From contig CALSCP010002457.1 in NCBI GenBank assembly GCA_943704425.1, forward strand, positions 1-64,000: a stretch of 64,000 nt of DNA, given 5' to 3'. Origin of the DNA: Ministeria vibrans ATCC 50519. Lineage: Eukaryota > Protista > Filasterea. Below are positions 2,529 through 60,214 of the stretch, in pieces. How positions within the stretch are numbered: the first letter of the stretch is position 1; every line of letters starts with the position of its first letter. The position numbers and the translations under genes are program-made. A model generated the notes under the pieces. It searched no databases, was not told the origin of the DNA, and was given only the letters and a program-made list of their open reading frames with translations.

Positions 2529-5028
2529 ATGGCAGCGCGAAGGAGAGTTGCGGTGTTGCTCACCATTAGTGCTGCCATCCTCTGCGCCTTCTACGCGGTT
2601 GTTCACTCACTCTCGGCTGGTCAGACCACTGTTCATGACCGGACAGGCCGTAACTCCCGCGCTTGGCCGTTGCCAAGACCGTTGTCTCGTCTCGCTCTTT
2701 CGCTAAACTCCCAACAAAATCGCATCCTGAACGTAGACCCAATTCATGAGACTCAGGGTCCAACCGTTCCACCAAGGCCTTCGCCAAGAACCAGTTATCG
2801 CACGTTTTCCACGTCGAACGGGACACGAGGGCACGACAGCGGTATTCATCATTCGCAGATGTCGTCTCGGTTTCTCTCGGCTGCGCGCCCCGTACAAACA
2901 CACATCAATTGGCACGCACCCTCGCAAACTACAATAGAGAATAACACCCAATACCAGAGCTTGGATGTGTATCTTTTCACACGGGTGCGGTGACCACGCG
3001 AAGCATCTTCTTTTCTAAATTCTAGTTTCGACTTCCTTTCTACTTTCTAAAACCTTTTCTTAGGTTCACGCTTGTGGCATCTCCTGCTCCTACCTGCTTC
3101 GCCACCAGCTTCAACATGCCATGTATACGCTCAACATATCCTCTGCCAACGTCCTTTTAGAAATTTCGCCCTCGAGTGACGCAGCAGCTGTCAAAGATCT
3201 GTTTGTGACAGCCATGGCCTGTGGGCTGTCCAGAAACGCTATTCGCCTTGCGGACGAATCAGTGACACCCGCACAGCGACTTTTTGACCGTCTAAGCGAA
3301 ACAAATCGGCAGCTTCAACACGTTTGGGTTGTGCTGGCCAACGGTAACGACCTCGTTGATCTGGGGCAACGCACTGCTATTTCTGTCGCTCGCGAAATGG
3401 CTGCAAATCGCGCGCTCGTCCTCAGCTCACTGTGGCACCAACACGGCACTTGGCAGTCTAACGAAGAGACATCTGTCACTTTGGATACACCAATATTTCT
3501 GCAATACCCTTGTGTGCGTCGACAGCCGTCTGAGTTAGGAAAATTGGACAAAATGCAGCAGCGGAGAGTCTCTATGATCCGAGGCGACGTCGGCGTCACC
3601 GCTGACTTTCAGGACGTTTTTCAGTCACACTCATTGTGTGTCGTGGCTCTACTCCCTTCCGTACTGGGTTCAGGAGGCGACCGAGCTAAAGCCGAGCAAG
3701 TGTGCCGATCGCGCGTGACCATGACCATGGACAACGATGACACACGCCTGATGAATCTCGGCTCTGTGGCGCACTTCCCTTGCTCCGTTGGCACTCGTTA
3801 CGGTGATACGGACGCTGTGGAGTGCAGTATGGTATACCTAGCAGATACGCCCCCAAGGCAAAGTGGCCAACTACACCGCCGCTGTGTCAACGAAGGTCCA
3901 GTCGACACGGGCGCGTGTGCGCTCTCTTTCGGCGCCGGGCGACATGCTATCCTTGTGACTGGCACGTGTAGCGAAGCTCAAGGTATTGCAGCAGTGATAC
4001 GCACGGTATCGAGTTATGCATCCGAAGCTATTGATATTTTGGTGGTAACAACCGATGGTGGATGTATGCTGCGAGAGCTCGAGCTTCACAACGGATTTGC
4101 TACACCTTGGCTCGACCGCTCTGTGCCACCTTTGCTCCGTGGGCAATATGCCATGCGACGTCGGCGCATTTTTGTGAGCGAGTTGGATGTCGTAGAGCTC
4201 AACGGCTGGAGTGACAAGTTTGCTGCACTACACAACGTGTCGCACGATGGTCGTGCGCAGTTGTCACGAAGCGATCTTTTTACCCCGCTCAATTTTGTGC
4301 GCTTTCGCGTTGACAAATTGTTTCCGCCAACCGTAAAGCTTGCCCTGTACCTTGATACCGATGTCATGGTTCGCGCGGATGTTGTTCCCCTGTTTGGAGG
4401 TGTCGCAACAGAATGCTCGCGCGAGCATCCCCAATGGGCCATGGCTGCCGCATCGGTTGAACTGAGCCCTTATGTCCATCAAGACGCTCAAAGGCACAGG
4501 TTTTTTGGTTTCAGCGATTGGCTCGATAGAAAGCGACGTCCTGAGTTTGCTGCGAGAGTGACTGATGCAATCCGTAGGTACAATAGGCGGCCGCCAAAAA
4601 CGAAGAGAGGTCGCGATTCTTTACTGAACATTGGCGTGACACTGTTCAATCTGCCACGATGGAGGATGGACGAGATGGAGGAGCGTTGCATGCAATGGAT
4701 GGACTTCCTACGACACTACGAGAAGCAGACCTTTGCACAAGAGCCCCTGAACTTGGCCACGCGTGGATTTCAGTGTCTGATTGACAGTACGTTCAACATG
4801 CAGCCAGGTGGGGTGAGTTTTGCGTGCCTGGCGCACACCAGCTCGGGTGAGTCTCAGCATCCTATGGCGAATTTTCAACCTGTTATACTACACGCAAAGG
4901 GCCCCTACAAGCGGCATACGAACCGCTCGCGCGACGACCAGATTCGCCAACAAATGCCTGATGATAAGTGTGTCGAGGGTGTTTTTCAAGATGCGTGGGA
5001 CGACGCATTGCGTCTCGACTCCACTTGA
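2529..5028 (+). CDS. Type II membrane glycosyltransferase, family 8 (GT-A), ~806 aa; exons 2529-2984 and 3064-5028
   Basis: N-terminal signal anchor (RRRVAVLLTISAAILCAFYAVV). A phase-0 GT-AG intron at 2985-3063 joins the two track ORFs in frame. GT8-type motifs: RFRVDKLFP, LYLDTDVMV (DxD), LNIGVTLFNLPRWR, QEPLN, ILHAKGPYK. Confidence 0.85.
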
Positions 5029-38157: not shown

Positions 38158-40453
38158 GCAGCAGCAGCAGCAGCAGCAGCAACAGCAACAGGTTCAGCCG
38201 GTCATTGCTCACTCGCCCCTTCCGATGCCTTCTTCGTCCTCATCCTTGATTGATACTACCTCAACAAAAGATGCGACGCCTTTCGCTGGAAGCAACGAGG
38301 ATAAGTCATCGCTGTTGGGCACAACCATACCTGTGACTGTGAAGAAAGAGGAAGATGATTCAGTGATGCCTCAAAGCGTTGTCAAGCCTGACAGGTCTGG
38401 TGTGGACAACGTGCAACGGCAACAACAGCAAGATCAGCACAAACAACAGCAATCAGGACGCAAGCGTAAGCGCTTGTCGTCATCCTCCTCCAAACCAACG
38501 TCTACGCCTGTGTTGCATTTATCGCGTGAGCTTCACTGTGAACACCCAAATACCACCGCACTGACGACGCTGGGTGCCGAAGCATTTGTGGTGTGCAGTC
38601 AGGGTCATGTACATCGACACTCGCTCGAGACGGGCGATGAGACAGGTCGTGTGGAGGGCACGCACAATGTGTCAGCGGTGACGCTGATACGCGATAGTGC
38701 GCTCGGCGTCTTGCTTGCATGCGGCGGTCGCGACGGCTCGGTGCGTGTGTTTGTGGCGGCAACTGGCATCCTAGTGCAAGCGTGGTTGCTGGATCAAGAC
38801 TATGTGACCGCCTTGGCAGGCTGTCATTTTGATTTGATGGCCATCACTTCGATGGGGAAGCAGCTGGTACATTTGGACATTGCGAGTGGCTGTACTGCAA
38901 TGGTCAATCACCATTTTGCCGACGAGATCCACAACGACTCGCGTGCGTCCGCCCTCGACGTCTGCTATGACCCCTCCGATTCCACTCTGCCGCCCGTCTT
39001 TGTTGTGGGCATTTCGCAACAGCTTGGACTGCTGCAACGACAGCCATCCAGTGCCGTCGAGTACCGCCTCTCCATTCTTGATGTGGGTGCCCCCGTACAG
39101 CAGTTTGTCTGCAATGGTGCGTCACTTGTGTGCACCACGACCGAACGGGCGTTGTTGACCACCGTACGCTATCAGAACATTGTGCGCAACGTTGCTGGCT
39201 TGTCCTGTCCACTGAAGACGGCGGGCCAGCCCATTCAGAATGAGGTCACAGCCATGGCGGTGGACTCCAAGTATGCGTATCTGGGCTACATCGATGGATA
39301 TGTGAACGTTCATGACATCAAAACGGCGTCTCTTGTACATGCCTTTACGGATGGCTTGGATCACCCCGTTCACAGCATTTCGCTGGTAGGCTCAAATGCG
39401 TTCGCTTGCCTCTCGGAGGGCACGCTCTGGTTGACTTCGACCATTCCTGCTCATGCGTACACTTGCCGCTGGACCGGGTGTGCGGTCTTGTGTGGCATGC
39501 TCTCACACCTTGAGATGCACGCACGTAGCGTGCACTTCGCCTCAGTCACGGGTGAGCCACTCACCGAAGTCCAATGCCAGTGGTGCGACTCTTCGACCCA
39601 GCCCTGTCTGGTTCACCTGAGCGACGCAAATTTCTCCAAACACATCAACGAGCACGGCGACACCTCATGGCATCGTCACAAAGAAGGTCGTGCGCAACAG
39701 GCCGTCACCATGGTGACACCACTTTCCCAGCTAGCCGTCAGCGCCGACATTATGCAACGCACCGACATCGTCTCCATGTGCGGCATGCCCGACTGTGGCA
39801 GTCTGGTGGACACGACAGCCGAATTGGCCGCGCACCTTGTCCGTAGTCACAACCATGAGCTGTTTGCTGGTAGTGAAAGCGAAAGGGAGGATGAGGACGA
39901 GGTTGAGGACGAGGAGAAAGAAGAAGAAGAAGAAGAAGAAGAGGAGGAGGAGGAGGAGGAGGAGGAGGAGGACGACGACGACTTTGATATCGATGTAGAA
40001 GAGAGCGACAGCAGCGATGACGACGACTTGTGCACGCCAGTGTGGCAAAACACGCGACCACCCAAACCTCAAGCGTCATCCACCTTCACCACCACCACAT
40101 CAACGACGGAAGCGCCCCCCTCCAAACGCCACAAGAATGACACAGCCACAACCAAGACGTACCCGCCCAAGCAACCCCCCAAGAAACACCCTATCCCCCC
40201 TTGGATCCGCAACAGCGCGTCGAAGCACTCGACCAACCACGCCAGGACCACCGCTGGCATCCCGCCCGACCCCTACGAAGTCTTGCAGATCCATCGGTGG
40301 GCCAATCCCTCCACCATCAAGTCACACTACTACGAACTCGCACGTCAGTTCCATCCCGACCGTAATCCAAACAATCCTGATGCCAACGCTCAGTTTGCTG
40401 CAATCTCCGCCGCATATCAAACTCTCGTCGCACAAAGTAATTCTCTTAAGTAG
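35451..40453 (+). CDS. Large multidomain protein: 2x RRM, Pro-rich, KKKAAEDA repeats/coiled coil, polyP/polyQ, WD40, C2H2 fingers (ZNF106-like), acidic tract, C-terminal J domain
   Basis: RRM1 is assembled from small exons (LKICDLP...DLATSQSRGIAKV). RRM2: SLYV..FSAFG...KKCAFVTY. WD40: CGGRDGSVRVF, LGYIDGYVNVHD. Fingers: CRWTGC..HLEMHARSVH, CQW..HINEH, CGMPDC..HLVRSH. J domain: DPYEVL..YYELARQFHPDRN..ISAAYQTL. Confidence 0.85.
37057..37330 (+). repeat. Coding 24-bp tandem repeat (GCAGCGGAGGATGCGAAGAAGAAG, encoding AAEDAKKK), ~11 copies
   Basis: Near-perfect tandem copies with few substitutions. Confidence 0.95.
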
Positions 40454-40525
40454 AACTAAGCTTAAGATTAATGAATGGCATGTACAATGATTGTACCATA
40501 AAAAATCTTTCTATGATATTTTGTG

Positions 40526-40806
40526 TCATTTCTTTTCCACGTTGACGTTGACAATTCTGCCCTCGATTCGGGGGGCAATGGCGCGAAACCGAGAGTTTGC
40601 CCATGGCTTGCCCATCCAGCGGGCGAGAGCGCGTCGCTGAGGACGAGTAGCCGAGTCAAAGGCATCGACGGCCTCCACTTGGCGGAAGAAGTTGCGCAGG
40701 AGAGTTGACAGAAGGGCGCCTTGTTCGTCGTCAATCACGAGCTTCAACTGGAGGAAAGACGACGAGAGAGAGAGAGACAGACAGCGACAGATTCAGCTCG
40801 AGAAAA

Positions 40807-40841
<35 letters not shown>

Positions 40842-40864
40842 CAGAGACAGAGACAGAGAGAGAC

Positions 40865-40895
<31 letters not shown>

Positions 40896-41261
40896 CAGAG
40901 AGACAGAGAGAGAGACAGAAAACAAGGTGATAGAGAGAGAAAGAGGTATCATTATTGCCGTGTGGCTTACGTCTTTGAGCATGGTGTAGCCATCGTTGCC
41001 CTGCTGAAGGTAATGGCGCGTACAGCACCTGAGTGTGTCTGTGTCTTTAATCTCGCGCCCGTTGAGGGTGACGCTTAGAAGTCGCTCACCAGCCCTCCTT
41101 GCGCCGTCAAAGACCACGCGAACGCCTTGGCTCACCTGTGGGAAGCGTCCTTCGTGCGCCGGATACCGCGACACGCCATTCTCAAGCGCAGCACGAAACC
41201 TTGCACCGCTTATCTCAACCACAACGCAACTGAATAGACAAGAGCGTAAGCTAGTGTGCGT

Positions 41262-41309
<48 letters not shown>

Positions 41310-41710
41310 TACGTGTCCTCAAAGGGAAAGGCATCCATCACATCGCCCACTGTGACTGTGCCAGGCTCAACTACACTGTCTCCACGAATGGACCCTGAAG
41401 AATGCATAATACACAAAGAGAGAGAACAGAGTTGAGAAAAAACGTGTTCTTTCGGTGTGTCCTTTGTACCGCCACACAAAAAGGCCACATCGCAATTGTA
41501 CGCGCCCAACATTACATCCGCTACCAGATTGCCCCACGTAGACTCAGCAGTGCGCACAACCTGACAAGAAACAGAAAATGTCAATTCTAACCCTAACCCC
41601 ACTTTCTCAAGTAGCCCATCTCTCAGTCACACACACACACACTCAGTCTCTCTTTCTCCCTACTCTCCCTCTCTCTATCACTTTGATTCTATATCACTTT
41701 TTCTTTCTCC

Positions 41711-43325: not shown

Positions 43326-46300
43326 TTATACTAAGCTCTCTGCTAACCTCCTCTCCTCCATCTCGTGCTCAAACGCCACCATGTCACACAGTACAATGCG
43401 TCCGTCAGCGTTGGCCGCTACCACAATCGAGTCGGAGCTCACGTCCACCGTGCGCAACATGTTCAACTCGTGATACTGCACAAGGCGGCCACTCGAGCCG
43501 AGCCAGTACAGACCACCCTGAGCCGTCTTGTCGAGCACCGCCGTCTTGTCCGCGCCTGCCGTTGCCACGTAGACTGCATATAGCGTACGACTAATGGGCA
43601 CCCAGTCGTCGCGCCGCCATGCATACACGCGCGGCTTCGTATTCGTGCACGCCATAAAGCCATCTTCGCCAATCGACAGCGTCGTATGATTCTTGCCGCG
43701 TCCCAGCGACATCCAACGTCGCTCTTCGGCACGCCAGCGCAATGGCAACCCGCCCATATCCACTGCAAGCGCGTTGTCACCCACACCCGCCGAAATGAAC
43801 CGCACTTGACCAGGCAGCACGCGCCATCGCATCTGCCCATCACGACGGTGCACTGTGCCGTCTCGCGCGCGCGCCCACACGAACAACCCGTCACAGACAG
43901 AGACCCCCGCCAGCGCCGGCGGCGCCGCATCATCACACGTCCACTCGCCCGTCGCACGGTTCTGCTCATAGAGTGCTCCACTCCGCGTCACACACACAAA
44001 ACAACCAATTCGACCGCCTCGCGACACGTCCACCACAAACTCGGGCGGCTGTTGCGCAAGCACAAACCGCTGGTATGACGGCTCTCGCAGGAGCACTCCT
44101 CGCTCCCGCGTGCATCCCACAAGCACTCCATCGTCGCCCATCTCTACTTCCTTCATCCACACCATCCGCGTCACCGGCTCCCACTGCGCCTTCTCCACGT
44201 CCACCAGACGGTACACGCATCCTTCGCGATCCCACAACGCAACACTCGTTGACGATCCACAACTCACCCCCGCAATGTTCCGTGCCGACCCATTGTGCCG
44301 ATCCCAGTCACTGCCATTCCACACAAACACATTGTGCTCATTGTTGACACAGTACATCGTGCCGTCCGTGCCAACCGACAGTGCCTCGTGGCGACGTCCC
44401 CGAAGCCTCACAAACACCTGCTGTTCCTCAATCCACAAGTGCGGTGTCCGGTCCATGTCTCGTGGAAACATCACTGCCGCCGAGCCAACGCCAGCGTCCA
44501 CCCACCCACACCCTCCACGCGATGGCATCGCCACAGCAACCCACCCCATTCGCAACGCCAGATCCGCACGCTCCGCCTCCTCTTCCTCCTCCTCTTCCTC
44601 CTCGTCGACCTTCTCCTTTTCTTCCTCCTCCTCATCCTGTACCACATCGTCGCTGTGTCGTTGTCGCCGAAGTTGTCGACGACGACGCTGCACTCGCACC
44701 GCCGTGGCATAGCATCGACGGTAAAGGGCGTAGGGCGCATCACGCTGCACCGCCCACACGTGTGTGTCCGAGGCACTCACTTGCGCACACTCAAAGCTTA
44801 GCGGCTCCCTCACCCATTCTTGCGTGGCCGCATCAAATTGCCACAAAACACCCGATTGACCCACCACAAAGAGTGCCTCGTTCGATGCGTGACGCGTCAC
44901 CGACACTACAAACTCGGGGGGCTGCGGTGTAAACGCATTCTCAGGCAATTTCGAAAGCGAGAAGATGAGCCCATCGCGAAAGGAACCGACCACAGCGTGT
45001 GTCGGCGCAACGTCCATCGACTGCACCAGACGCAAACGTCCCTCGCGGAATCCAGGCGCATCACGGTGGATCCAGTCAACGTTGCCACACGCATCGCGGC
45101 CAAGAACGTGGCGCGCGTTGCCCACCGACACGGCCACGTGGCCCTCGGATTGACGCCGCATCTCTTTCCACCGCTTGGGGTTTGTGTGAAGCAACACCCC
45201 GTTGCCGTCCGAAACCCATGGAGACCCGTCGTGGCCCAGAGCACAATCAGGCGCCCGTATCTGTGTCGGGTACACTTCGATCAGTCGCTGACCCGACGAC
45301 GCCCGATGCATTGCCATGGCACCGCCACGACTCAGCACCATTAGCGCCCCCATCTGTGGACCACCCAAACTCACGGCACTCGCACCACCCTCGACCGGAA
45401 CGTGGTTCCAGTCATTGTTGCCCTCACGCGTGAACAAGTGTCCCTCGCGTGTGCGTACCGCCAGAAATCCACCCACACAATCAAGTGACACCTGAACACA
45501 GCGCTCGGGTGCACCAACAACACGCGTCCATGATGGTGGTCGCCCCTGGCGTGTGTTGTACGAGTAAAGCCCGCCATCTACACACACCGCCATCAAAAGC
45601 AAGCGTTTCTCGTCGGCCGACACGGACACGGCCGCCAACGGAGGTTGAGGCACTGTCAGGAGCACGCCATTGAGCGGTTCGCGCACCAGCACCACTCGAC
45701 CGCTGCTTGTCACGACCACAATGACCCCGTGGTGGTTCACATCCACCCACACAATGCCACCCAGCGAAAGAGGCAAATCCACGTCAAGACGCTCCCAGCA
45801 CTTCTTCGCATCTAGAAACACCACTCCAAGTGCGTCCCAGCCAACGGTCGCAAAACGTCCGCCCGTCCGCACTCCCATCAATCCCATGCTCGATGAAACA
45901 CTCGTCGTGCGCCCAATCTTCTCAAATGGCACACTCTGTCCACCCAGCAGTGCACGCATGCCGTCGTGTGCCGACAGCGTCACATACGTTCCGTCCGAAG
46001 CAACGTCGCCTGCTGTCACAATCGTCTCCGCGCGTGTCACCGCATTCCAACACGGCCGAGACGCACTCGCTTCCATCAGACGTCCCCCACACACCTCGAC
46101 AGCTGAGAGAGGACAGCCTCGACCACACGCGAGTCCCTGGCCACGCATCTGCCGCGTAATCTGCCCACCCCCGATTAGCTGCCATGACAATGGTGACGAA
46201 GAGGAAAGCTCCAACGTCAGCACTTGCCGGGTGTCCCTCTCCGTGGCAACCACCCAGCCGTCATCCGTGAGATCCGCCACGCAAAAGAACACTGACTTAC

Positions 46301-49300
46301 CCTCGTAGACACGCGGCAGCCAGCGCACTGTGGGCACGCGCTCATCGGTCGACGTCATGAGCCCAAAGTGGTTCACCGACACAACACACACAGCGCCAAT
46401 GTCGCTCACACACGCAAGCGACGACTCACCTGGACGTCGATGCTCATGTCCATACGGGCTCCACGTGGAAATGGACACATGTGCAAGTGCGGTGTCCTCG
46501 GGCAGAGTTGTGGAATGCCAGCGACGCTGCTCAAAGCGACGTTGCTCTGCCATCCGCACACTCAAATGCGTACGATGGATCTTGTTGTCGCGACAGGCCG
46601 CAAGCACAACACCACCGTGGCTCACGTCAACCGCGATCACGTCAAGGATTTCCACCAGGCGGATCCACTTGTTGCGCAGGCTGTCCAAACGCCACAACTC
46701 GCCGCTCGATGTCGCTACCACCACCTGACTCGCGTCTGCCGCACCCACACTCACGACACGTCGTAGACTCCCCACACGCGTCCACACGGGTGCGTCGTTG
46801 TGCCAGGTACGCCGGTGAACATATCCATTCGAGTTGTCCACGGCAATAAGGTCGCCATTGCAGCAGCAGGCAACCGCGCGAAAGGCAAGGCCATTAGTCT
46901 TTTCGCGACGCCACTCAAAATCACCATGCCACACCCACAGGGCACCACTCAGCGTTGTAATTGCACCCAGATAGCGGTGTGCCAGCGACACCGACGTCAC
47001 CGTCTCGCCACTGCCCACCATACGACTGGGCTCCAACGGGCGCAAAAGTGGTCTGCGTCCGGCATCCGTACACAAGAGAGCACCATCAAAGAGAGCCACC
47101 ACAAACCCATCGTGACCAACGGCAACTGCTGAGCACGGTGAATTTTCCACAGGCGAACACAACTGTTGCCAAATACCCTGGTCGCCCTCAAGAAACCAGG
47201 CAGTCTCGGACGACGACGACAGCGCCACCGTAAACAGCGGAGTCACCGAGCCACGTCCCGCCGTCGACACTCCCATGACGTCCTCAGGCAACGCCGGCAC
47301 AAACGTACGACGGTCATGCTCACGTTGCTGTAGCAAAACCATGTCACTCTGGAACTCGGTGCCGGGTGGTAGCACGGCGTGCACACGACCATCGGCACAC
47401 ACGGCCGCAATGGCACCCGCCGACGACACGTCCGCATGCAATACGCTGCCGAGTCGCTCAACAAGCGACCACTTGCCGTCACGATAACGCTCCAACGTAC
47501 CTCCCATGCGCCACGCCACAACATTCGCCTGGTTCGCCACTGCAACTCCCTCCATGCCCTCGTGGATTTTTCGCCATAAACCGGGCGCAACGCGCTCCAG
47601 CACTTGGTGGTTCACGTCCACCACATACATACACTGATCTTGCTGTTCGCCCAGACTCACGCACATTACACTCGCCGGCAGTCCCGTCTCCTCCACCCAA
47701 CACTTATCGGTCGTTGTGTACGTCCACACCAGACCGGCCACAGTTACCACCGACACCACCGAAGCCGAGGCCACCGCAACTTGCCTGCCTACGTGTGCCT
47801 CGGGCAACAGCACCACCGGATCAGACCATTCCTCACGGCGTCGGCTCCACCACTGCAGCGCACGACCGTCCTCACGCAGCGACACCAGCGAGCCGTCCAC
47901 GGCCGCCGCCACGGCCCGTCGCGGTGCGTCATTGGAAGTCCTGCACTCGTTCCAACGACCCTCCTTGCCCTCATCCATGTGCCACAGCCACACTTCGCCA
48001 CGTCCATTGAGTACGACCGCCTCGGCGTCCGAGCGCGACGAAAATGACACGGTACGCAAAGAGCCACTCGTCAGATTGGGCAACTCGGCGGTGTGCAGTC
48101 GCTGAAGCTCGCGAATTACACTCACAAATTGCTCAGCGCACTCAGCGGTCGCCACTGGCAGGCGCAACCAGTGGCCACACGGCGCCTGCGATCGACGTGC
48201 CTCCACATGCGCGCGACTCATCCTTTCCAGCTCGCGCGCACTGAACCGTACGTCACCGGGCGACGCACGACGCCGCAAATGCGGCGTGTGAACCACTACA
48301 AGATCCACAACACGCGAGTCGCCGGCGTTGATCTGGGGTGGAGCAAGCGCCGAAAGGAACGACTGAAATACCACGGAGTAGTCGCAGTCGCGCGCTCCCG
48401 ATACTGGCTTCACCAACATCAGACGGTCCGTTGTGAGCAGTAAAATGACAATTTGTCCGGCCGGCGCTTGCCGCAGCACCACGGGACTCGTGAGCTTAAC
48501 GTGCAGCGCATAGCGCTCACTACCACTCACAACACCAAGTTGTCGCAACACCTCCTGGTAGTAGGCACCGTCTGGATGGTATGCCTCGAGTACGCCACTG
48601 TGTGCCACCACACGCGGCAATCGCACCATGGTCGTGCCATCGTTAGCACACCGCCGTGACACCAGCACCGAAAAGGCCTCGGCCACTCCCACCAGCGGAC
48701 CAATCATCACACCAAGAGCACCAGCAATCACATTCAAAAAAAAGCCCTTGGCGCCTCGGCTGCGACGTCCTATACCCACCGAGCTGAACGCCTCTGTGAC
48801 ACCCGACGTCAGCGCCGACGCTGCATTCACGAGACGACCGCGGGAGCGGAGGGCACGCTGTCGCTGGTGGCGACGGTACAAATAGTCGGCGTCAAATATG
48901 CGACGGACTTTCACTGCTCCCACGAGCACGCTGGCAAACTGCGTCACACCACTTACCGTGTCCGCCACTCCGTCAACGAGGCCTCGCAGGGCGCGCTTGT
49001 CGCCACGCCCCATGTCCTTGAGTGCACGCCCAAACGTGTCCGCAATGTTAGGCAAGTTGAGAACCGCTTGCGCAACTAGCGGAACAAGCTTGGCCCAGAT
49101 GCTGTCAGAGACATGCGCAAAAAAGTAGCCTTGTAGCTCCATGGGAGTCAGGAACAAATTGCCGCGATCCAACGGCGGAATGTCAATCTTTAAATTGTTC
49201 ATGGTAGAGCCCCGCTCGATCCATGTATACAGCTGATTGTAGCGCGAGCGACGCAGATGCATCAGTTCATTGGCGCCTAGCATGCACGACCGGTAGTTAA

Positions 49301-52300
49301 GGCAAAGCTGAAGTTCGCCCAGATGTCCCGTGTACACATAGATGGAACCGCCCGTCGACGCCACCAACTCGGCCACGAGCGCCGCGTCCGATATGTTGGT
49401 GGGCGCAAAGTCAGGCAGCTCATCTTGAATGTCCGCTGCAAACCGGAGCAGAATCATAAGGTACACCTCCTCGAGCGACACCACCAGATTGGTCGGGAGT
49501 ATCACACGAAAATCGTCCACTGCCGCAATCTCCGTGCCCATCGACGTGATCACACCGTCCTCGCCAACATCCCGCGACGTCGGCACTGCCATGCTCAAAT
49601 ACACCTCGAGGAACTTGCACTTGCCCTCCACGGCCTCCTCGCCGCCACGGCTGTCGCTCATTGTCCGCTTCTTGGGTGCGCCTGCCGACACAACAATGGG
49701 GAAGGGTGTGTCCGCTTCGGTGACATTGTCTACCTGCAGTCGATCGATGATAAGCGACAATGTCGTCTTGGGCAATAGATCCGCCGAGATATTCACGTCG
49801 GTGAGACACGCATAAAGAATTTCGCGATTGCACTTGTCAATGGCACTAAAGCCAACACCCACGACGCGTAAATCAAATCCCCACGACCACACATTGGCCT
49901 TCTGCTTTCGCTTCAACGCCCGTGCTCGCAGTCGACTCTCCTTGCGTTCACGCGCCAGCGACACATTGCCACCAACGGAAAATCGCTCGGCATCCTCATT
50001 TTCGTTGTCGTCAGAGGAATCTTCAGAGTCGTCCTTGTCGTCGTTCTCGTCCTCTTCTTCTTCTTCTTCTTCTTCTTCTTCTTCTTCTTCTTCTTCTTCT
50101 TCTTCTTCTTCTTCTTCTTCTCCTTCCTCGTCGGCTCCCCCGTCCAACATTTCGTACGAGTTAAAAAGCGCGCTCCGTCCACCATCGTCACGAATCACAA
50201 CGCACCGAGTAAAGCCCTCAGGCTCGACCGACACGCTCAACAGACCCGAGCCGGGCAACACTTGTTGCACGTCAAAGTATTGGTGTTCATGTTTGCGTGC
50301 TCGCCCTGACTTCATCACAATCTGCGGTTCCTTCGATATCTTGCCACTCATGTCCACCGTCAACAGCCTGTCGGGGTAGGCCTCCACCGACACACGTCCA
50401 TTTGAGATTGTCCATCGTTCGCGAGCCCCATCGACGCGGTCGTTGCGCTCTCGCAGCACCAGTTTACCTCCAACCTTGCCCGCATCGCTTGGCACGTAGC
50501 ACAGAATGCGCTCACTGCCACGATGACGCAAGCGACAGTCGGCCGTCAGTTGCCATTGTTGCCAGGCGCGTTCGGGCGCACTCGCGTACGGCTCGTCAAC
50601 GGTGATCGTTCGTCGTCGAGCGCTCACTCGCTCGCCCTTGGCGTTGCTCAGCAACACCGTCGTCGTATGGTCTGCCTGTTTCACCGAGAGAAGCTGTTGC
50701 TTAGAGCCGCCGCGTAAAGCCAGCGAGAACCACACGGCATACTCAAGGGTGTATAGTTTGTGTTTCGTGCCCAAATCAATGTCCTCGGGCGGATCCATGA
50801 ACACGCTCGACTGCGCCGACTGGGTTCCCACGCGCACAAGACGGTGAGGTGGTGGCGCCAGGGAAAACGTTTGACACGTGACGCTTGAGCGCGGCGCAAG
50901 CTCAATGCATTCGTAGTTGCCCTTGCCACGGACACGGACGGCGGTGAGTACCAACTCCGGGTCGATCAGGCTGCACAAGTGACCTCCCGAAAACATCCAC
51001 TGCTGGTGGTAGGCCGAGCTGGAGACGGGTGCGCGTGCAATCACCGGCAATCCCACCTGTGGCTTGCCCGTGCCCGCAATGTCAATCACCAGGTTCTCGG
51101 CCATGTTCGCGATGCGCCCGTCCGACGTGAAGCGCCAGAGCTGTCGTCGACCGTGCATCCCGTGCGTCTTCTTGGGCACCAACGACAAGCGGTCGTAGCG
51201 TTTCTCCTTCAAACGCATGTAAAAGCCCTTGCGGTGCGGTTCATCGTACTTGCGCGTGCCTACACGACGCCCCGTGTAGTCCACGGCAAGCACACCGCGC
51301 CCCACCATCTCAATGTAAAAAAAGTCCGAATTGTCCACGAGGCGATCGCCACTATCGGCAATGGCACTCGCCACAGCCGGCTCGCGATCGCCCGAGTACA
51401 CATAGGGATCAACCACGACCGAAATGACCTCGCCTCTCGCGGCTGTCGTCTGATCAATCACAAAGGGAGTAGACGAGCCAGGACTCACGCGGATGAGATC
51501 TCTCAAGGCACCCGACTCGGACCTGGTGCTGGCGCGACGCGTTGCCGCCTCATCAGTCGCGTTGGTCTCGTTGGTGTGTCGCAACTGCTCATCAACCTCG
51601 TGCTCCTGTTCGTCAAGTAGTCGGTCAAAGTTTGGCAGCGTGCGCTGTCGAAAGAGCACTGGCACAAACGACTTGTTGATAAGACGGAATGCGGGTGCAC
51701 CCGTGTTGGAGCGCACAATGACGTACAACGCGGTGTCGCGACGACGAAACTCCACATTGAAGTGCAAAGGACTCGCGTGAGAGTCTCTGCCAGTGGCGGT
51801 CGCCCTCACTCGCATTTCAATCACGGTCGTGCCCAATGAATTCGCTTGTGGCTCGATAGGCGTCGACCAGTCGTAGCGCTCGTCAATTTTTCCTGTTTCA
51901 GGGTTGATTTTGATCATTTGTAATGTTGCACGATGACCCGACATGAAATAGAAGGGATGCAGGCGACCGTTGGGCAGCTCAAGTACAGTCGACTCAACCA
52001 ACGATGAGTCACTCTCGCAAGTCGACTCGTCACCGACAATCGCCCTTCCCGTCACTGACGACGGCCGCGACACGCACTGACCCAGACGAATGGCACTGCC
52101 TGACAGGTTGCACACCATGAGCGATGGATCGACGCGTAAATGAGTGGTGCGATTCGACGCGGACTGGTGGGTCGCGACCACTGTGAGTTGACGCACCAGC
52201 GAGTTGTGGCTCTTGAACACCATGACTTGAAGCGGGAAGAGGCTGCCCACGCTAATCTTAGACGACCACTGGATAGGCACAGGCTCACCATTGCTCAGAC

Positions 52301-55300
52301 GTGCGTTGGTTTTCTCGCCGAGAGACAGCGTAGGTCGACTGCGTGCCCCGTCAAACATGATGATTTCCTCTTCCTCGTTCGCGGACGCCATGCGCACACC
52401 GTGTGGAAAGGCAATGGAGTGAATTCCGTCGTTGCTGACGGCCAGAGGCAATCGCGTGCGGTTGTGAATGATAAAGGGCACATGGAAGCTGATTTCGCGC
52501 GCCTGGCATGTCTCGAGCGAGCGCGTGTTCATGTGCGTCGCCACCACAGTGATGTTGAGCTTTCGCGATTGCTCGTCGCACACCTCAAACAGAGGATTAT
52601 TCACATGGCCACCAATGGTGATAACCGCCTCGTCTGGCAGCTGCGAGTTGAGCACAGGGGGAAAGGACACGGTCACGCCGCTGTCGGGCTGCACACCTTC
52701 ACTGCTCGCAAAAAAGCCTTCAATGTGCACGTGGAGATCGACGTCAAGTGTGTTGCAATGCGCCAAGTGGTACACCGGCACGCGCGAATTGGGGGCGACC
52801 CGACCGCGTCGGTCACCCACAGTAATGTCAATGTTGCATGGCAAATCGTTGACGATGCAGAGCGGTGGAAGAACGGTGAAAATGTGCGACGCGTGCGTCG
52901 CTTGCACATTCGGGTAGGCTCCCGCGTCAACCTGTACCTCCATGTAAAAGCGCTCGGTGACATCGTCGTCAACGTGCGGACTTGCTGCAGGCAGTGTAAA
53001 GCGCGTCGGCATACCGCCCGTCTGCGGGAACGCCTCCCACGCAAAGATGGCGTCGCTGGGCCTCCAGCAGAACGAGTCCTGCATGTCCTCGCCCACAACG
53101 CCCGAGCGCATGCTGTACAAGTCTGCATCCATACTGCCACTGTACGCTCCGTCAACAATGCTGTTGCACAGCGTGTCGCTGACATTGGCGAGCGGCTTGA
53201 TGCGAAATGGGATACGCTGGTTGCGCACTGGGATGCCCACGGTCTTGCCCGCCGGAACAATCACAACGCGCTCGTCAATAACCGAAGTCATGTTCCGGTC
53301 CGCCGCCGCTTCTTGGTCAAAAAGCACAAACTCCCCCAAGTCATCATCAACTTTGCCTGCTTGCTGCGACTTAGCAACCGCACTCATCTCCTCAATGCGC
53401 TTGCGGGCCTGCGGCCACACGACGACCTGAATGGGAACACTCAGCTGATTGCACACTTGTACCGGCGACAGCACTTCGACGAGGCGGTAGGCACCGCGTA
53501 GCTTCACATTGACAATGATGATAAGGGCATCGTCAGGATCGTCAATGAGAATGGGTCGCAGCGGTGGCGTGTGTGGCGTGCTGTCATCAGCACGCAGCAA
53601 AACGGCGTGCGTGCGCTCCTTGATGTCAAGCGCCGGTGAGGGCGCATAGCCGGCAACGTTCAGAACCAACAGAGTGTCCGTCTCGCACGCCATGTCACGC
53701 ACACTCTGGCTTGGAAAACGAAAGCCAACAGTCTGGCCAGCCTCGACAGATTTGAGTCTACTCTGACGGCTCTTGTTGTTGTTGCTGTTGTTGTTGTTTT
53801 TGCTGTTGCTTACAGCGGCAAACTGCATCTTCATGTCAGTCCCATTGTAGAGACGATATGGATGAAACTTAGAGCGTGTCGCGCCAATGACGCCTGTGCT
53901 GCTCTGTAGCTCGGTGGCGGTCATCGAGTAGACTGACTCGGTGGTGCTGCTGTGCTCGCGCTGAAGTTGCTTTTTTTGTTGTTGTTGAAGCACGTCGCGC
54001 TCAAAATTGAGCTCCAGGTAGCGCTGAATGGCTGGCAGGGTCTGCGTGATCATAGTGTGGGTGAGATTGATTTCAATACGTCTGGCAATGTGTGCCTCGA
54101 AGCGTCGCCCAATGGCGGGGTCGCGGATGAAGCCGATAGAGAACGACTCGACAAGAGGTTCCCAACTGAGTAGGGCACCATTCCAATTGTCTAGCATGCA
54201 CTGCGCGATACCCTCGATGTACAAACGGGGCTGAGACCACTGCCTAAGGGTGAGATTGCTCTCGATACCCAAACGCAGCAGTGGCACGTCCATAAAAAGG
54301 GATGTGTCATCAACAAGGGTCACGGAGATCTTTTCAAGCTGCAAAGCAAGGTGCTCCTCGATGAGCACTTGTCTGCGTGAATCTTTTTTGCGACTGCGGC
54401 GTGTAGAAGAGTGTGACGGTAATGATGATGATGATGATGACGGCACCATCGACGAGAGTGTGTCGCGGTCGGTAAAGGCGGTCGTGGAGAAAGGCAAAGA
54501 CGACGGGTCCATGTGATCGTCGACGGTGTCGTCTACGGCAAGATCCAGGCTACGATGATCGCGGGCACGCGGAAGACCGGTGGGCAGAATCGAGTTAGTG
54601 GTGAGGGTCCCCGCAGCGTCAAAAACGCCTGAAGAGACAGCAACACCGGTTGCGCCCCCGCCACCCATGTATCCACCTTCTTCTGCCGTTGTTGCTGCTC
54701 CACGTCCCTCTCTCTCCCCTCGTCCAAGAGCATCAAGCGAATGGGCGCGCTTGTCCTTGCTCGCACCCAGATTGGTTTCAAGCGAGGCAAGCGAGTCTGT
54801 GTCGCTGTCTCGGTTGTCCATGGCAAGTTCGTCCCTGACTTGCTCGGGGACTTGCAGAAGGTTGGTAATGATGCGAGCGAGCGCACCCGTGTCAATGCTC
54901 GACAGTTGAAATTCGAGTGGAAACGAGCGAGCGCCCACCACGGTCTTGATGGAGTGCAAACGCGCAGGAGCACCCGGAGCAGACTCGTCGGGAAGCCACT
55001 TGTGGGTGATATTAAAGTGAGCGGTGAACGAGAAGGGCGCGTCGGTGATGACACGGTGTTGGTCCGGCAGAAGTATGGAGTCGAGGTGCGCAAAGAACAA
55101 AGCCCCACCCTTGAGGTTACACGCGCATTGGACTGTGTTAGATTCGAGGGTAGAGGTCGTGCTGCTGTAGTCACAACTGAATGCCACTGGCGACTCAGCG
55201 CAGTTGTCGCGGCTTTTGTTGTCGTTGTTGTTGTTGGAGTTGCCATCGTCAACTTGAAAGCGTACTCCAAACACAGTACCTGGAAGATGTTGCAACCATG

Positions 55301-58300
55301 TGTCGGCCGTGAGGACGTGCAAGTCAATCACTGTGAGTGAAACGGACGTGTAAATGGAGGTAAGGGGGGCGCTTGGCTCATCTTCCGACGATGGGTGCTT
55401 GGCCACGTTGGTTGCTGCCGTCGTGGACAACGATGCGACAGACGACGCCCCAGTCGCTGCGGTAAGTGACGCGTGGGTGCCATAAGCACGTGTGGTGAAT
55501 GTAGGGCGGAGAGTGTTCTCAGGAGGAGAGCGCATGAGGAAAACTAGGGTACGAGCAACGAAACGATCACGGAAAAACAATGTCACCGAGCCCCAACGAA
55601 TCACAAAGCGGTTCGCGGCGTCATTCGAGTCGAGAGTCGCAAAGAAAGCCATTGGAGCAGTGGTGTTGTTGGAGGAAGACGCCAACGTGGGTGCGCAGAT
55701 GGAGAGGAATGGGGCGTTGTCGGTATCGTCGTTCTCGTCGTTAGCACCTTTGTCATCAAACGATGCAGCCGGAGTGGACAGGTCATAGATTGAAATGGAC
55801 GCCAGTGATACGCTCGCCGAAAGACCTCGCTCGGCCGAAGACGCTGCCTTGAGGTGAACCTGTGAGGTACAAAGGCGAGCAAAGCGACCTTGTGTGTCCT
55901 CGAGTGAGACGAGCACCTCCTCAACATGGAAATCTTCCAGAACAAATGAAAGGAGATCGCTGGTCGCTGACGTTGGAGTAGGCATGGGGGTAGCGGCAAC
56001 GGAGACTGAAATAGCGCCAAGCTCGGCCTGAGATGCAACAATGAGGGAGCGAACACACGCGAGAGCTGGTGGAGACGTCATGGCAATGTTGTCACGGAGA
56101 AGCGCCATCGAGAGCAAATAATCATCCTCGGTCAATTCGAGTGATAGGCGTTCGATGCGCCCAGAGGCTGTGATCAAGGTCGCTGGAGCGTTGGAGGTGG
56201 CCGCTGAGACAAAGAAGGAGGGTATAATAGCGGTCGCCTGAGTGTCGGAGAGTGTGACAAAATTGGCAAATTGTTTGCGCTCTGCGATGTGGTTGCCATC
56301 AATGCAAAACACACGCGCGCCTGACAGGGTTACAGTGCTCGTGTGGCTCTCTCGGGTTGTCGAGGCAACCGTGACGCTGAGCGAGCCGGGCAGGAGACAG
56401 ACTTCGCTAGTGTCCTCGTGCCACGGGGCGACGGGCACGACAATGACGGGAGTCTCAATGCAAATGTTGGCGGAGAGACGGTAAAAGGGTCGCTCTGACG
56501 ATGAGGATGTGCTTGATGTGGCAGTGGTAGGCACTGACGATGCCGACGGCGATATCGACGACACGTGGACCGTTGATTTTGTAGCGACTGTCGATTGAAT
56601 GGCTGTTGATGCGCTGAAAAGAACGAAGTATTCGGCGAGCATCAATGCAACGGCCTGCACGTGAGTGTAGCGCAGCGCCCGAACCGTCAGCTGAATGGCA
56701 AGGTCGTGGAGCACGGGCACGTCTGATTCGGCAATGGGCGATGGAATGTCACAAAAGTCAACGGAGAGATGGAGAGCTCTGTCCGAGTCGGAGGAAACAG
56801 CCACCTCGGCATCATTTTTGGAGGAGAGATGATGAATGTCGATGGGCCACACAAGCAAATCCTGTTTAAAATTGTGCACAGCAAGTCGCAGAGTGTGACA
56901 TACCAGCTGGCACTGAACGCGTTCGGGTAGAAGACGCAACGCGAGGGTGGCGGCGCCTGTGTCGAGCGAGGCAAACAACTCGGAGGAGATCGATGCGGAA
57001 CCGCGTGCGTTGGGAGTCTCTGCAGGCTGGTAGGCGGTCACTTTGAGACCGGCAAGGTTCACTTGAAGTTGCACGCACTCGTTAAAAGAGCGACGTTGTG
57101 TCGCCGTTGTTGTTCCCATTGGCATTGGTGTTGATTCGATGAGCAAGGCGCGTGCGCGTCGCGCGCGTGCGGGTGATAATGGCAAAATCGGAGCAATGTC
57201 GAGGGGTGCGGCAACTGTCTGCGCACGACGACTCTCAATGTGGTCCGAGACGCTGCGCGAGGCGGCTAGCAAGACTTGCATTTGACGAACAACGACAAAA
57301 GGATGAATGGAGATGTGACAAAGAGCTGTGTCAATGACAATGCGAGTGGCAAACTGCTCGCCTTCGACGTAGCCATGCTGCTGCTCGACAACGAGACGCA
57401 CCAAAGGCTGTTGGTCGCGGGAGTCGCTGGAAAAGAGAGCGTACGAGTCGTCCATGAGCAACTGTGTTCTGCCAATGCAGAGCAATACAGAGCGTTCTTC
57501 GTTCTTCAGGGTGACACTTGAGTCAAAGCCCGCACACTGGAGACGCACAGCACGCCCTTGAGCCATGAGATTGAACGCACAGGGTTCGGCGTGCACAACC
57601 ACACGGACAGCGGTAGGAAGAAACTCAAGCGCGTCCTCAAAGACATCGTCGTCGTCGTCCATGTCAATGTCGTCCATCTCGTCGTTGTCGGAGGCGATCG
57701 GTCGCGTGGCAAGCGAGGAAGCAATCCAGGCGGCTGTTTGAGGAGCGACAACACTTGACAAAGGCTGAGATGGTAAAAATGGTGGCAGGTCTGATGGTGT
57801 GGTGGGTGTTGCTGGTAGGGCTGTGGGCTGCGATGGTGGTAATGCAGATGGAGCAAGGACAATGTCAGGCACACAGTCGACGATGTAGGAGGCGTGAGCC
57901 ATGTCGAGAGTCACAGACGACTGGTTAATGTGCACTTTCACGTCAATGTTAGACTGTGCATTGGGGCTGGTGGCAACGTCGACACGCGTGTACATGGACA
58001 TGGAGTCGAGGAGTGGGAAGGTAGTGTTGTTGTTGCCGTCATCATTGCTGTTGTGGCACAGGTCAAAACGCGCGTCGGAGAGCGAAATAAAGTAAGAGTC
58101 GACGAGTGGATCAACACAGGCGAATATGGTGATGGACTCGTCGCGGCCCTTTACGGCACTGTTACTGATGTTGTTGCAGTTGTCACTCCACGTACAGTGA
58201 ATGTGACCGGCGTTAGCAATGATTTGTGAGCGACCGTCGGCGCTTGGCAGTACAATGGTGGGAGTTGCAATGGCAGCAAAGACGGCGACGCGCATGGGAA

Positions 58301-60214
58301 GGGCAGGAGAAGAGTTTCGAGTGAGAGGGACAACTGTAGAGGGGACTGCTGAAGCAACTGGTTGCTGCGATGAGGCGAGGGCCGGCATGAAATGGTTGAG
58401 TAAGAGCGCGAGAAAAGCGTCGCTGTACACAAGACGTGACGAGAGGACGTCAATGTCAAGTTGAGGAACGCCAGGGTGATCGACTGGATTGGTGTCAACC
58501 TGGATGTAGATGAGACGCGGATCGCCGTCGTCGTCGTGTTGATCGCATGCAAACACAGGGTGCGTCGCAGGTTCAGCGTGCTCCTCTCCTCTTGATGGGC
58601 GTACAACATGCGATACGATAAGATTGTGGAGAGAGAAGCAAGCGGCGGTGGCGGATGGAGACTCGCGGAGACGCGCAGAGCAGGCGAGGCGGGAAACTTC
58701 GGCAATAATAGACTGGCCAAGCGAAGGAGCATTAAAGTGGAAAGCAACCGAGGGTAGTTGCAGAGCAAGGGTGATTGTCGCGTAGTGAGGGTCGTGCTGA
58801 GGTTCGCCTTCAAGAATATCTCCTTCCTGTTCTGCTTCGTGCAGGAGCTGCACCTCAGACTCGATGGTCTCCAGAAGTTCGCGTTCAACGTCGGGCTCGG
58901 TTGTGGTCCAGGACGAAAACCACGACGAGACATTAACGTAAGCAGAGGAAAGGACCGACGATGATGAAGACGCAGCAGCAGCAGCAGCAGCAGCGGCGGC
59001 GGCAGCAGCGGCGGCATTCGAGGTGGAGGAGGAACGCTGGTGCTCCTTGACTTTTGCGCGTGCCTCGCGACGAAACGCAACAATGTCGCTTGACGTTAGG
59101 GCGTCGGCAAGCTCGATGCGCTCAAGTTGACGGAGAGTCTCAACCGGAGGGGGCTGCTTGGACGCGTAAGATGGAAAGCGAGACATGTAGAGTGGAATGT
59201 ATTCGACGCGTAGGGTCGCGAGGGTGTCGGGCGAGAGAGGAGCGCGCGCGTCGCTTTGCGCCTTGAGACGTTTCTGAAGTTGATGCTGTTGTGCAGAAAA
59301 GGCGTCGGTAAACGACACGAGAAGCGCGAGAGAGTCAGGGCAGGTATTGAGCGTGACCGGTGATATGGTGCAGTCGAGTGACACTTGGGGGTCGCCCGAG
59401 GCGGCCGCTGTGTGTTTGTCGAGTCGCATTCGCAGGTCCACTGTCGCCTTGACATTATCGACGAGAGCCACTTGACCGAGATGAATGGCAAGCGTATCAA
59501 GGAGGAGTTGTTTGTGCGAGGGTGTGGAGGACGAGGTGGTGGACGGCGACGCAGCGGAGGGTTTTGCCGCGCTGTGGGCGTTTCCAACGTGCAGTTGCTT
59601 GAGCGAGACGCTGATGCAGTCGGCGTCGCTTTCGCCATGCAAACGGAGCACGACACGGTCGACTACCACGGAGAGACCGCGGACAACACGAGCAATGATG
59701 CCATTCTTTGCGCTGAGGCCGATGGAGCTGAGCCAGCCGGCGTGAGGAGCAGCGGGGGCCCGCGGAGCGGGAGAAAGCGCTTCGATGAGCGACTCCTTCA
59801 CGAGGCGCTCGCACTGGACGACATCAAACGCGTCCGCATCTTGCAGGCGGACGTCGGCGTGGACGTCGGTGACGACGACGCGGCACAGAATCTCGCTGGA
59901 GCGCCATTCGAGAGCAACTTCAACTTTGGCAGCGCGAAGACTGTCGACGACGAGCGGAAACGACGCAGGGAGCACCGGGTCCACAAGGAACTCCGCGTCG
60001 GTCAGCACAACGTGGACTGTCAAAACAGCGGCGGTGGGAGGGAGGAGGAGAGAATGAGAGAGAGGAGGCGGAAAATGTTATTTTGTTTCGCTTTTTCTTT
60101 TTTTTCGTTCGTTGTACCTTTCGACAGTGAGAAATCGGATTGCTTGTCGGCGCATGATTTCAGGTAGTCTTTGAGTTTGTTGTCAATGAACAGCTGGAAC
60201 AATCTTTGCATCAT
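43326..60214 (-). CDS. VPS13D: VPS13D-like bridge-like lipid-transfer protein (~5600 aa) with a C-terminal extension of tandem tectonin-like beta-propellers; exon 1 60214-60118, exon 2 60016-43326
   Basis: Chorein-N start (LFIDNKLKDYL...). FFAT-like DDDDDVFEDALE. DNWNGALLSWEPLVE. VAB repeats (PYRLYNGT, SPVQVCNQL, PPLCIVNDLP, VPFIIHNRTRLPL, FRLINKS). Ricin QxW repeats. VPS13D-like PGSGLLSVSVEPEGFTRCVVIRD. APT1 region (GFSAID..REILY, LQVDN), ATG2_C-like helices and a PH-like region (VRLPRVV). Confidence 0.88.

Follow-up and report, generated by a model that had tools for sequence, protein, structure and literature searches.

Six tectonin-type beta-propellers predicted at the C-terminus of a VPS13 lipid-transfer protein in Ministeria vibrans

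Structure of the gene and its tail

We examined a window of 64,000 nucleotides from the filasterean Ministeria vibrans ATCC 50519 (GenBank assembly GCA_943704425.1, contig CALSCP010002457.1, positions 1 to 64,000 of the forward strand), in which the minus strand carries a giant gene for a putative VPS13 protein that runs on into a long repetitive tail. In an earlier sequence-only reading, this tail had been interpreted as a series of tectonin-like beta-propellers. The open reading frame (ORF) at 43326-60023 contains 5565 codons and no internal stop. Its 5' end opens inside the Chorein-like N-terminal domain, and the start, which is missing from the frame, was found just upstream. The probable exon 1 (60118-60214), recognized by eye from its Chorein_N-like start, begins with an ATG at 60214 and runs for 32 codons plus one base, the first of a split codon. 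It is followed by a probable GT-AG intron of 101 nucleotides at 60017-60117, likewise read from the sequence, with GT at 60117-60116, AG at 60018-60017 and a pyrimidine-rich 3' part, and its predicted removal restores the reading frame in phase 1. The giant exon 2 (43326-60016) then encodes the remainder of the VPS13 protein with the entire tail, including the stop codon at 43326-43328, in a stop-free frame with no run of N inside; the only N runs of the window, at 22611-22950 and 33620-33629, are both outside the gene. Taken together, the gene probably has about 5,595 codons in two exons (60214-60118 and 60016-43326). The earlier description of an uninterrupted exon is thus accurate for the tail but not for the gene, which has the small first exon upstream. 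The frame of exon 2, without exon 1 joined to it, was used for all searches and folds, residue numbers refer to the ORF at 43326-60023, and all features of the gene lie on the minus strand.

Judged from its sequence, the protein is a member of the VPS13 family, whose members are bridge-like lipid-transfer proteins, because Pfam detected a VAB (adaptor-binding) domain and a VPS13_C domain together with weaker VPS13_M and VPS13_N matches in residues 1-3984. The VAB domain (PF25036; 51624-52961, residues 2355-2800) scored 71.4 bits with E 7.5e-20, well above the 22.6-bit cut-off, and was recovered at the same place in a six-frame search of the genome. The VPS13_M match (PF25033; 53748-55046, residues 1660-2092) reached 44.2 bits with E 1.1e-11, below its 50-bit cut-off, and VPS13_N was weak, with 19.1 bits against a cut-off of 80. 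The C-terminal PH-like domain (VPS13_C, PF25037; 48075-48626, residues 3800-3983), which ends in a helix at about residue 3983 and was also found in the six-frame genome search, lies about at the cut-off in the long scan and above it on shorter pieces, with 22.2-24.9 bits against 21 bits. Behind the VAB domain, we found a ricin-B beta-trefoil lectin (PF00652; 50940-51170, residues ~2952-3028, E 4.2e-8), whose score was 33.9 bits (cut-off 29 bits) in a scan restricted to residues 2880-3300 and 25.9 bits inside a long piece. This lectin is in line with the earlier label "VPS13D-like". A UBA domain, which VPS13D has in its body, was not among the Pfam matches of residues 1-3984 with E <= 0.01. 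In addition, inspection of the sequence revealed an FFAT-like motif, VFEDALE after an acidic run, at 57621-57647 (residues 793-801), which suggests docking to the endoplasmic reticulum (ER) via VAP proteins. The motif resembles the FFAT consensus and is positioned roughly where the FFAT motifs of VPS13A and VPS13C lie. The body also contains a long Glu/Asp run at ~50000-50180 (residues ~3283-3340).

The tail comprises residues 3986-5565, about 1,580 codons, and follows immediately on the helix that ends the PH-like domain, which agrees with the length and position that had been claimed for it; from the start of the VPS13_C match to the stop codon, the protein spans 1766 residues. It is divided into six units, each starting at the higher coordinate of its interval. 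Unit 1 occupies 47289-48068 (residues 3986-4245, 260 residues), unit 2 46503-47288 (residues 4246-4507, 262 residues), unit 3 45648-46502 (residues 4508-4792, 285 residues), unit 4 44922-45647 (residues 4793-5034, 242 residues), unit 5 44049-44921 (residues 5035-5325, 291 residues) and unit 6 43329-44048 (residues 5326-5565, 240 residues). All six start motifs listed in the sequence-only reading are present, and the lengths fall within the 230-300 residues given there. Unit 5 carries a basic-then-acidic loop insertion at ~44480-44620, and unit 6 is predicted to end in a helix at the protein C-terminus. The GC skew flips its sign inside the gene, being about -0.25 over the tail (44000-50000) and about +0.2 over the 5' third (54000-60000), which indicates that the base composition of the tail differs from that of the N-terminal body.

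The tail clearly codes in this frame and is continuous with the body. There are no stops in the coding frame of the tail, compared with 18-51 in the other five frames, and the GC contents at codon positions 1, 2 and 3 are body-like (0.67, 0.50 and 0.65 in the tail; 0.62, 0.46 and 0.63 in the body). The relative synonymous codon usage of the tail correlates with that of the body at 0.66, while the off-frames give values of 0.30-0.38.

Family and fold of the propeller units

With unit 1, the other units share 21-29% identity, and the isoelectric points (pI) of the units range from 5.0 to 9.0. When we compared them by BLASTP, units 1, 2, 4, 5 and 6 and two units of a paralogue described below were linked with E-values of 1e-6 to 5e-13, the best shuffled control giving E 0.037. 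Unit 1 matched unit 2 with E 3e-7 and the paralogue unit p1 with E 2e-7, and unit 6 was matched by unit 4 with E 2e-7 and by unit 5 with E 5e-13. The best match of unit 3, the most divergent one, had E 0.04, which is no better than the shuffled controls. In leave-one-out profile searches, the units other than unit 3 scored 36-76 bits (67.8 bits for unit 1, 36.1 bits for unit 2 and 47.6 bits for unit 4), compared with at most 9.7 bits for shuffled sequences (200 each), and unit 3 scored 12.3 bits against 6.2 bits for its best shuffle. These comparisons point to homology of the units well beyond chance, with unit 3 as the weakest member. Conservation between the units is found in W, G and D-G columns, as is typical of a propeller scaffold.

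We then assigned the units to a family. Tectonin (PF19193) was the only significant Pfam family in the tail, with E 1.1e-15 and 58.1 bits against a 30-bit cut-off for the whole tail. When the units were scanned singly, unit 5 (E 8.3e-10, 38.9 bits) and unit 6 (E 2.8e-7, 30.7 bits) passed the cut-off and units 1-4 failed. However, an alignment of units 1-4 compared by hhalign with an alignment of ten bona fide Tectonin proteins gave a match probability of 97.5% with E 5.5e-12 over 205 columns. The Hyd_WA family, which had also been suggested for the blades, had an insignificant Pfam match in the tail (E 0.97).

Units 6 and 3 were modelled by AlphaFold from shallow alignments of 20 rows made of propellers, and both model as six-bladed propellers. 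The model of unit 6 has about 24 strands and the terminal helix, with a predicted local distance difference test score (pLDDT) of 88.9 and a predicted template modelling score (pTM) of 0.86. Its best Foldseek match in the PDB is Laccaria bicolor tectonin 2 (5FSB; E 2.9e-11, template modelling (TM) scores 0.78/0.83, root-mean-square deviation 2.3 A) at 19-20% sequence identity; carp fish-egg lectin and Pizza proteins, which are designed and six-bladed, come next. The model of unit 3 is of lower confidence (pLDDT 71, pTM 0.72), and Pizza6 proteins, likewise six-bladed, head its matches, tectonin 2 being ranked seventh. The combined results of Pfam, hhalign, the AlphaFold and Foldseek analysis of unit 6 and the model of unit 3 support the prediction that the six units are tectonin-type six-bladed beta-propellers, and the tectonin-type blade pattern proposed earlier is confirmed by the Pfam and hhalign matches and by the resemblance of unit 6 to tectonin 2.

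A second tailed gene and the search for relatives

In the same 29.7-Mb assembly, which holds at least five VPS13 loci, we found a second VPS13 gene with a propeller tail. On contig C1908, the minus strand at 26737-31875 contains a 1712-codon ORF whose 5' side is cut by the contig end. It encodes a ricin-B domain, a VPS13_C domain at residues 968-1033 and then two tectonin-type units, which were recognized by Pfam Tectonin (33.3 bits) and by the profile of our units (E 1e-14 and 6e-12). From the start of the VPS13_C match, this ORF continues for 745 residues to its stop. As controls, the frames of two other VPS13 genes, on contigs C2820 and C1103, stop 110 and 249 residues after the start of the VPS13_C match. 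Since the ORF on C1908 is only ~30% identical to the six-propeller tail, it represents an old and independent copy rather than a duplication error of the assembly.

Several features of the other loci were also observed. Contig C2820 carries two VPS13 genes ~20 kb apart (16319-20818 and 40360-41472), with open frames of 4645 and 2658 residues. The frame on C1103 enters a TG-type microsatellite after the PH-like domain, translated as a C/V/M/Y repeat, and this stretch is probably an intron or 3' untranslated region and not coding. On the minus strand of contig C2583 (35800-36800), there is a small, multi-exon, stand-alone tectonin-like gene with a proline-rich tail of the PPxY type.

To find relatives of the tail, we performed an exhaustive HMMER search with the last 1200 residues of the protein against 1.84 billion representative proteins at E <= 1e-3. 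The search returned 32 matches, mostly on units 5-6, with a best E of 7.6e-11 at 25% identity and a longest match of 1395 residues, and 19 of the 20 matches checked were Tectonin-domain proteins. Neither a long VPS13-like protein nor the protein itself was among them, and the absence of the latter shows that the proteins of this genome are not in that library. Within these 1.84 billion proteins, the protein thus appears to have no sequenced relative with a recognizably homologous tail. The result leaves room for other VPS13 proteins with an unrelated tectonin domain, because all but a very small part of the Tectonin proteins presumably in the library failed to score against so divergent a tail. 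Word-index protein searches with the tail in its full-length context, the tail alone and VPS13 residues 2300-3985 recovered no protein at all and missed even this one, which is explained by a protein too divergent for the index and a genome whose proteins are not in it. In the ESM Atlas, only sub-threshold leads were obtained (tectonin, tachylectin and LpqB propellers at no more than 0.88; VPS13_C at 0.76), with no cluster containing both, and a scan of JGI metagenomes with units 5-6 yielded no relative.

The literature gave a similar picture. Two systematic surveys have catalogued the accessory domains of VPS13 proteins (UBA, ricin lectin, discoidin-like sandwich, C2, PH and beta-tripod, among others), and neither a propeller nor a tectonin is included (PMC7613979, PMC10683392), and a review of lysosome repair treats VPS13C and TECPR1 as separate proteins (PMC12066097). 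Among 20 listed of the 22 papers that mention both VPS13 and tectonin, no title or abstract contains tectonin or describes the fusion. In these two surveys and the sequence searches we ran, we found no description of a propeller add-on after the PH-like domain for any VPS13, and the sequence-only reading, which knew of no characterized VPS13 with such a tail, agrees with this.

Possible roles of the tail and comparison with known systems

Based on these observations, we suggest, with a probability of about 0.7, that the locus is a real two-exon VPS13 gene whose product ends in six propellers joined by short linkers, and that the tail serves as a targeting or adaptor module at the acceptor end of the bridge. 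In VPS13 proteins, the bridge leads from the ER, which is engaged by the N-terminal end and the FFAT motif, to an acceptor organelle, and the choice of this organelle is made by VAB, ATG_C and PH, the accessory domains conserved at the C-terminal end (PMC7613979). The present protein would likewise dock on the ER by its N-terminal end with the FFAT-like motif, and its C-terminal end would face the acceptor organelle. Here the propeller chain would most plausibly extend or diversify recognition, giving the VAB and PH domains some additional reach and supplementing them with many binding surfaces, and the ligand of the chain may be proteinaceous, a glycan or the head group of a lipid. The most likely origin of the tail is the tandem duplication of a single propeller within this lineage, and a gene of the type seen on C2583 could have been the propeller donor.

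Here, we need to consider several points that weigh against this interpretation. Internal splicing or early polyadenylation could remove the tail. No fragment of the tail was present among the 1.84 billion representative proteins, and public assemblies gave no support. In a tblastn comparison, the VPS13 body of the C1908 gene resembled one of the other VPS13 genes of this assembly as closely as it did the six-propeller gene, or more so, and thus the two tailed genes are not shown to be closest paralogues and we do not claim a single fusion. With regard to the fold, the shallow, propeller-only alignments may bias the model of unit 3 towards a propeller. When the unit profile was compared with the PDB, it also matched designed 'Cake' and 'Bagel' propellers and WD40 propellers with E-values similar to that of tectonin 2, which indicates that the blade-level similarity is partly generic; this comparison was not used for the family assignment. 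Finally, the targeting role is deduced from the position of the tail alone.

According to one alternative, the tail is part of a separate tectonin gene next to this one or is absent from the mature mRNA after processing, in which case the fusion would exist only in the assembled DNA. The stand-alone tectonin-like gene on C2583 and the failure to find an identical fragment in public protein sets would be in line with this. However, the tail is a run of 1,580 stop-free codons with the codon usage of the body, and there is no N run in the gene and no linker gap after the PH helix. The strongest argument is the divergent locus on C1908, where the continuity from the PH-like domain to tectonin units is repeated. 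In view of the missing assembly gap, the codon usage and this second locus, the fusion appears unlikely to be an artefact, and we regard a separate or spliced-out tail as highly improbable.

If the fusion is real, its propellers could have roles other than general targeting. Tectonin propellers are lectins in some proteins, and together with the ricin-B domain they might form cytosolic lectin heads that bind glycans or methylated sugars on damaged phagosomes, damaged lysosomes or escaped bacteria and recruit the bridge for repair. Of the structures matched by unit 6, the best one, Laccaria tectonin 2 with bound sugars, is a true lectin and carp fish-egg lectin comes next, and the ricin-B domain is a second lectin-type fold in the same protein. 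However, unit 6 is only 19-20% identical to tectonin 2, and the columns conserved among the units (W, G and D-G) are of the propeller-scaffold type. A further objection is that TECPR1 senses sphingomyelin through its DysF domains and not through its propellers. Analogy with known pathways is favourable, since damaged lysosomes recruit VPS13C and ATG2, exposed sphingomyelin recruits TECPR1, whose function is tied to the recruitment of ATG12-ATG5 (PMC12066097), and in Dictyostelium a VPS13 paralogue connects the recognition of bacteria with their killing inside the cell (PMC5484366). A lectin role is conceivable and yet rather unlikely, and it is unlikely that one polypeptide would join the sensing of damage or bacteria, by six propellers and ricin-B heads, to bulk delivery of ER lipids through the VPS13 channel. 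The propellers may also be protein-protein scaffolds without a targeting role, which would oligomerize the bridge, dock regulators or autoinhibit its C-terminal end. Beta-propellers are common platforms for protein interaction, scaffolds of the WD40, Kelch, NHL and RCC1 types are numerous among the Foldseek matches of units 6 and 3, and the units are diverse in sequence (21-29% identity) and charge (pI 5.0 to 9.0), as would be expected for distinct partners. Nothing specific speaks against this reading, and the location at the acceptor-membrane end, beside VAB and PH, is at least equally compatible with targeting. We regard a pure scaffold as quite unlikely.

What directs a VPS13 bridge to its acceptor membrane is among the central questions that the field has yet to answer. 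If the targeting interpretation is right, the six-propeller protein and its two-propeller paralogue would show that targeting was re-engineered by domain accretion. If the propellers bind glycans or damage signals, sensing of the TECPR1 or galectin type would be joined to lipid-transfer repair, and if sensing and delivery are indeed combined, jobs that animals split between separate proteins would be merged in one. If the propellers do not bind such signals, the tail would be one more lineage-specific accessory module.

We compared the predicted protein with known systems. With the Tectonin family (PF19193), represented by Laccaria bicolor tectonin 2 (5FSB/5FSC) and fish-egg lectin (4RUQ), it shares the Pfam match and the six-bladed fold, at ~20-25% identity. 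The members found are short proteins, stand-alone or with several propellers, and do not exceed 1,395 residues, whereas here the propellers form the predicted cytosolic tail of a lipid-transfer protein. TECPR1 has DysF domains and an ATG5-binding region, and TECPR2 has an N-terminal WD40 domain and an LC3-binding motif. By Pfam, neither DysF nor WD40 was found in the tail, and the only PH-like domain is that of VPS13; no family model exists for the ATG5-binding region and the LC3-binding motif, and no search was aimed at them. The features in common are a cytosolic location and tectonin-type propellers, and TECPR1 and TECPR2 act at endolysosomal membranes (PMC12066097). The present protein is not a member of TECPR1/TECPR2, with which it shares only the propeller type.

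Among VPS13 proteins, plant VPS13M1/M2 and others provide a precedent for lineage-specific beta-rich accessory domains, some of them C-terminal, with no propeller listed (PMC7613979, PMC10683392). Animal VPS13D has in common with the present protein the VPS13 domains, a ricin-B lectin after or in the VAB region and the C-terminal PH-like domain (PMC7613979). In contrast to VPS13D, the Ministeria protein has no UBA detectable by Pfam (E <= 0.01) and, after the PH-like domain, carries ~1,580 further residues predicted to form six propellers.

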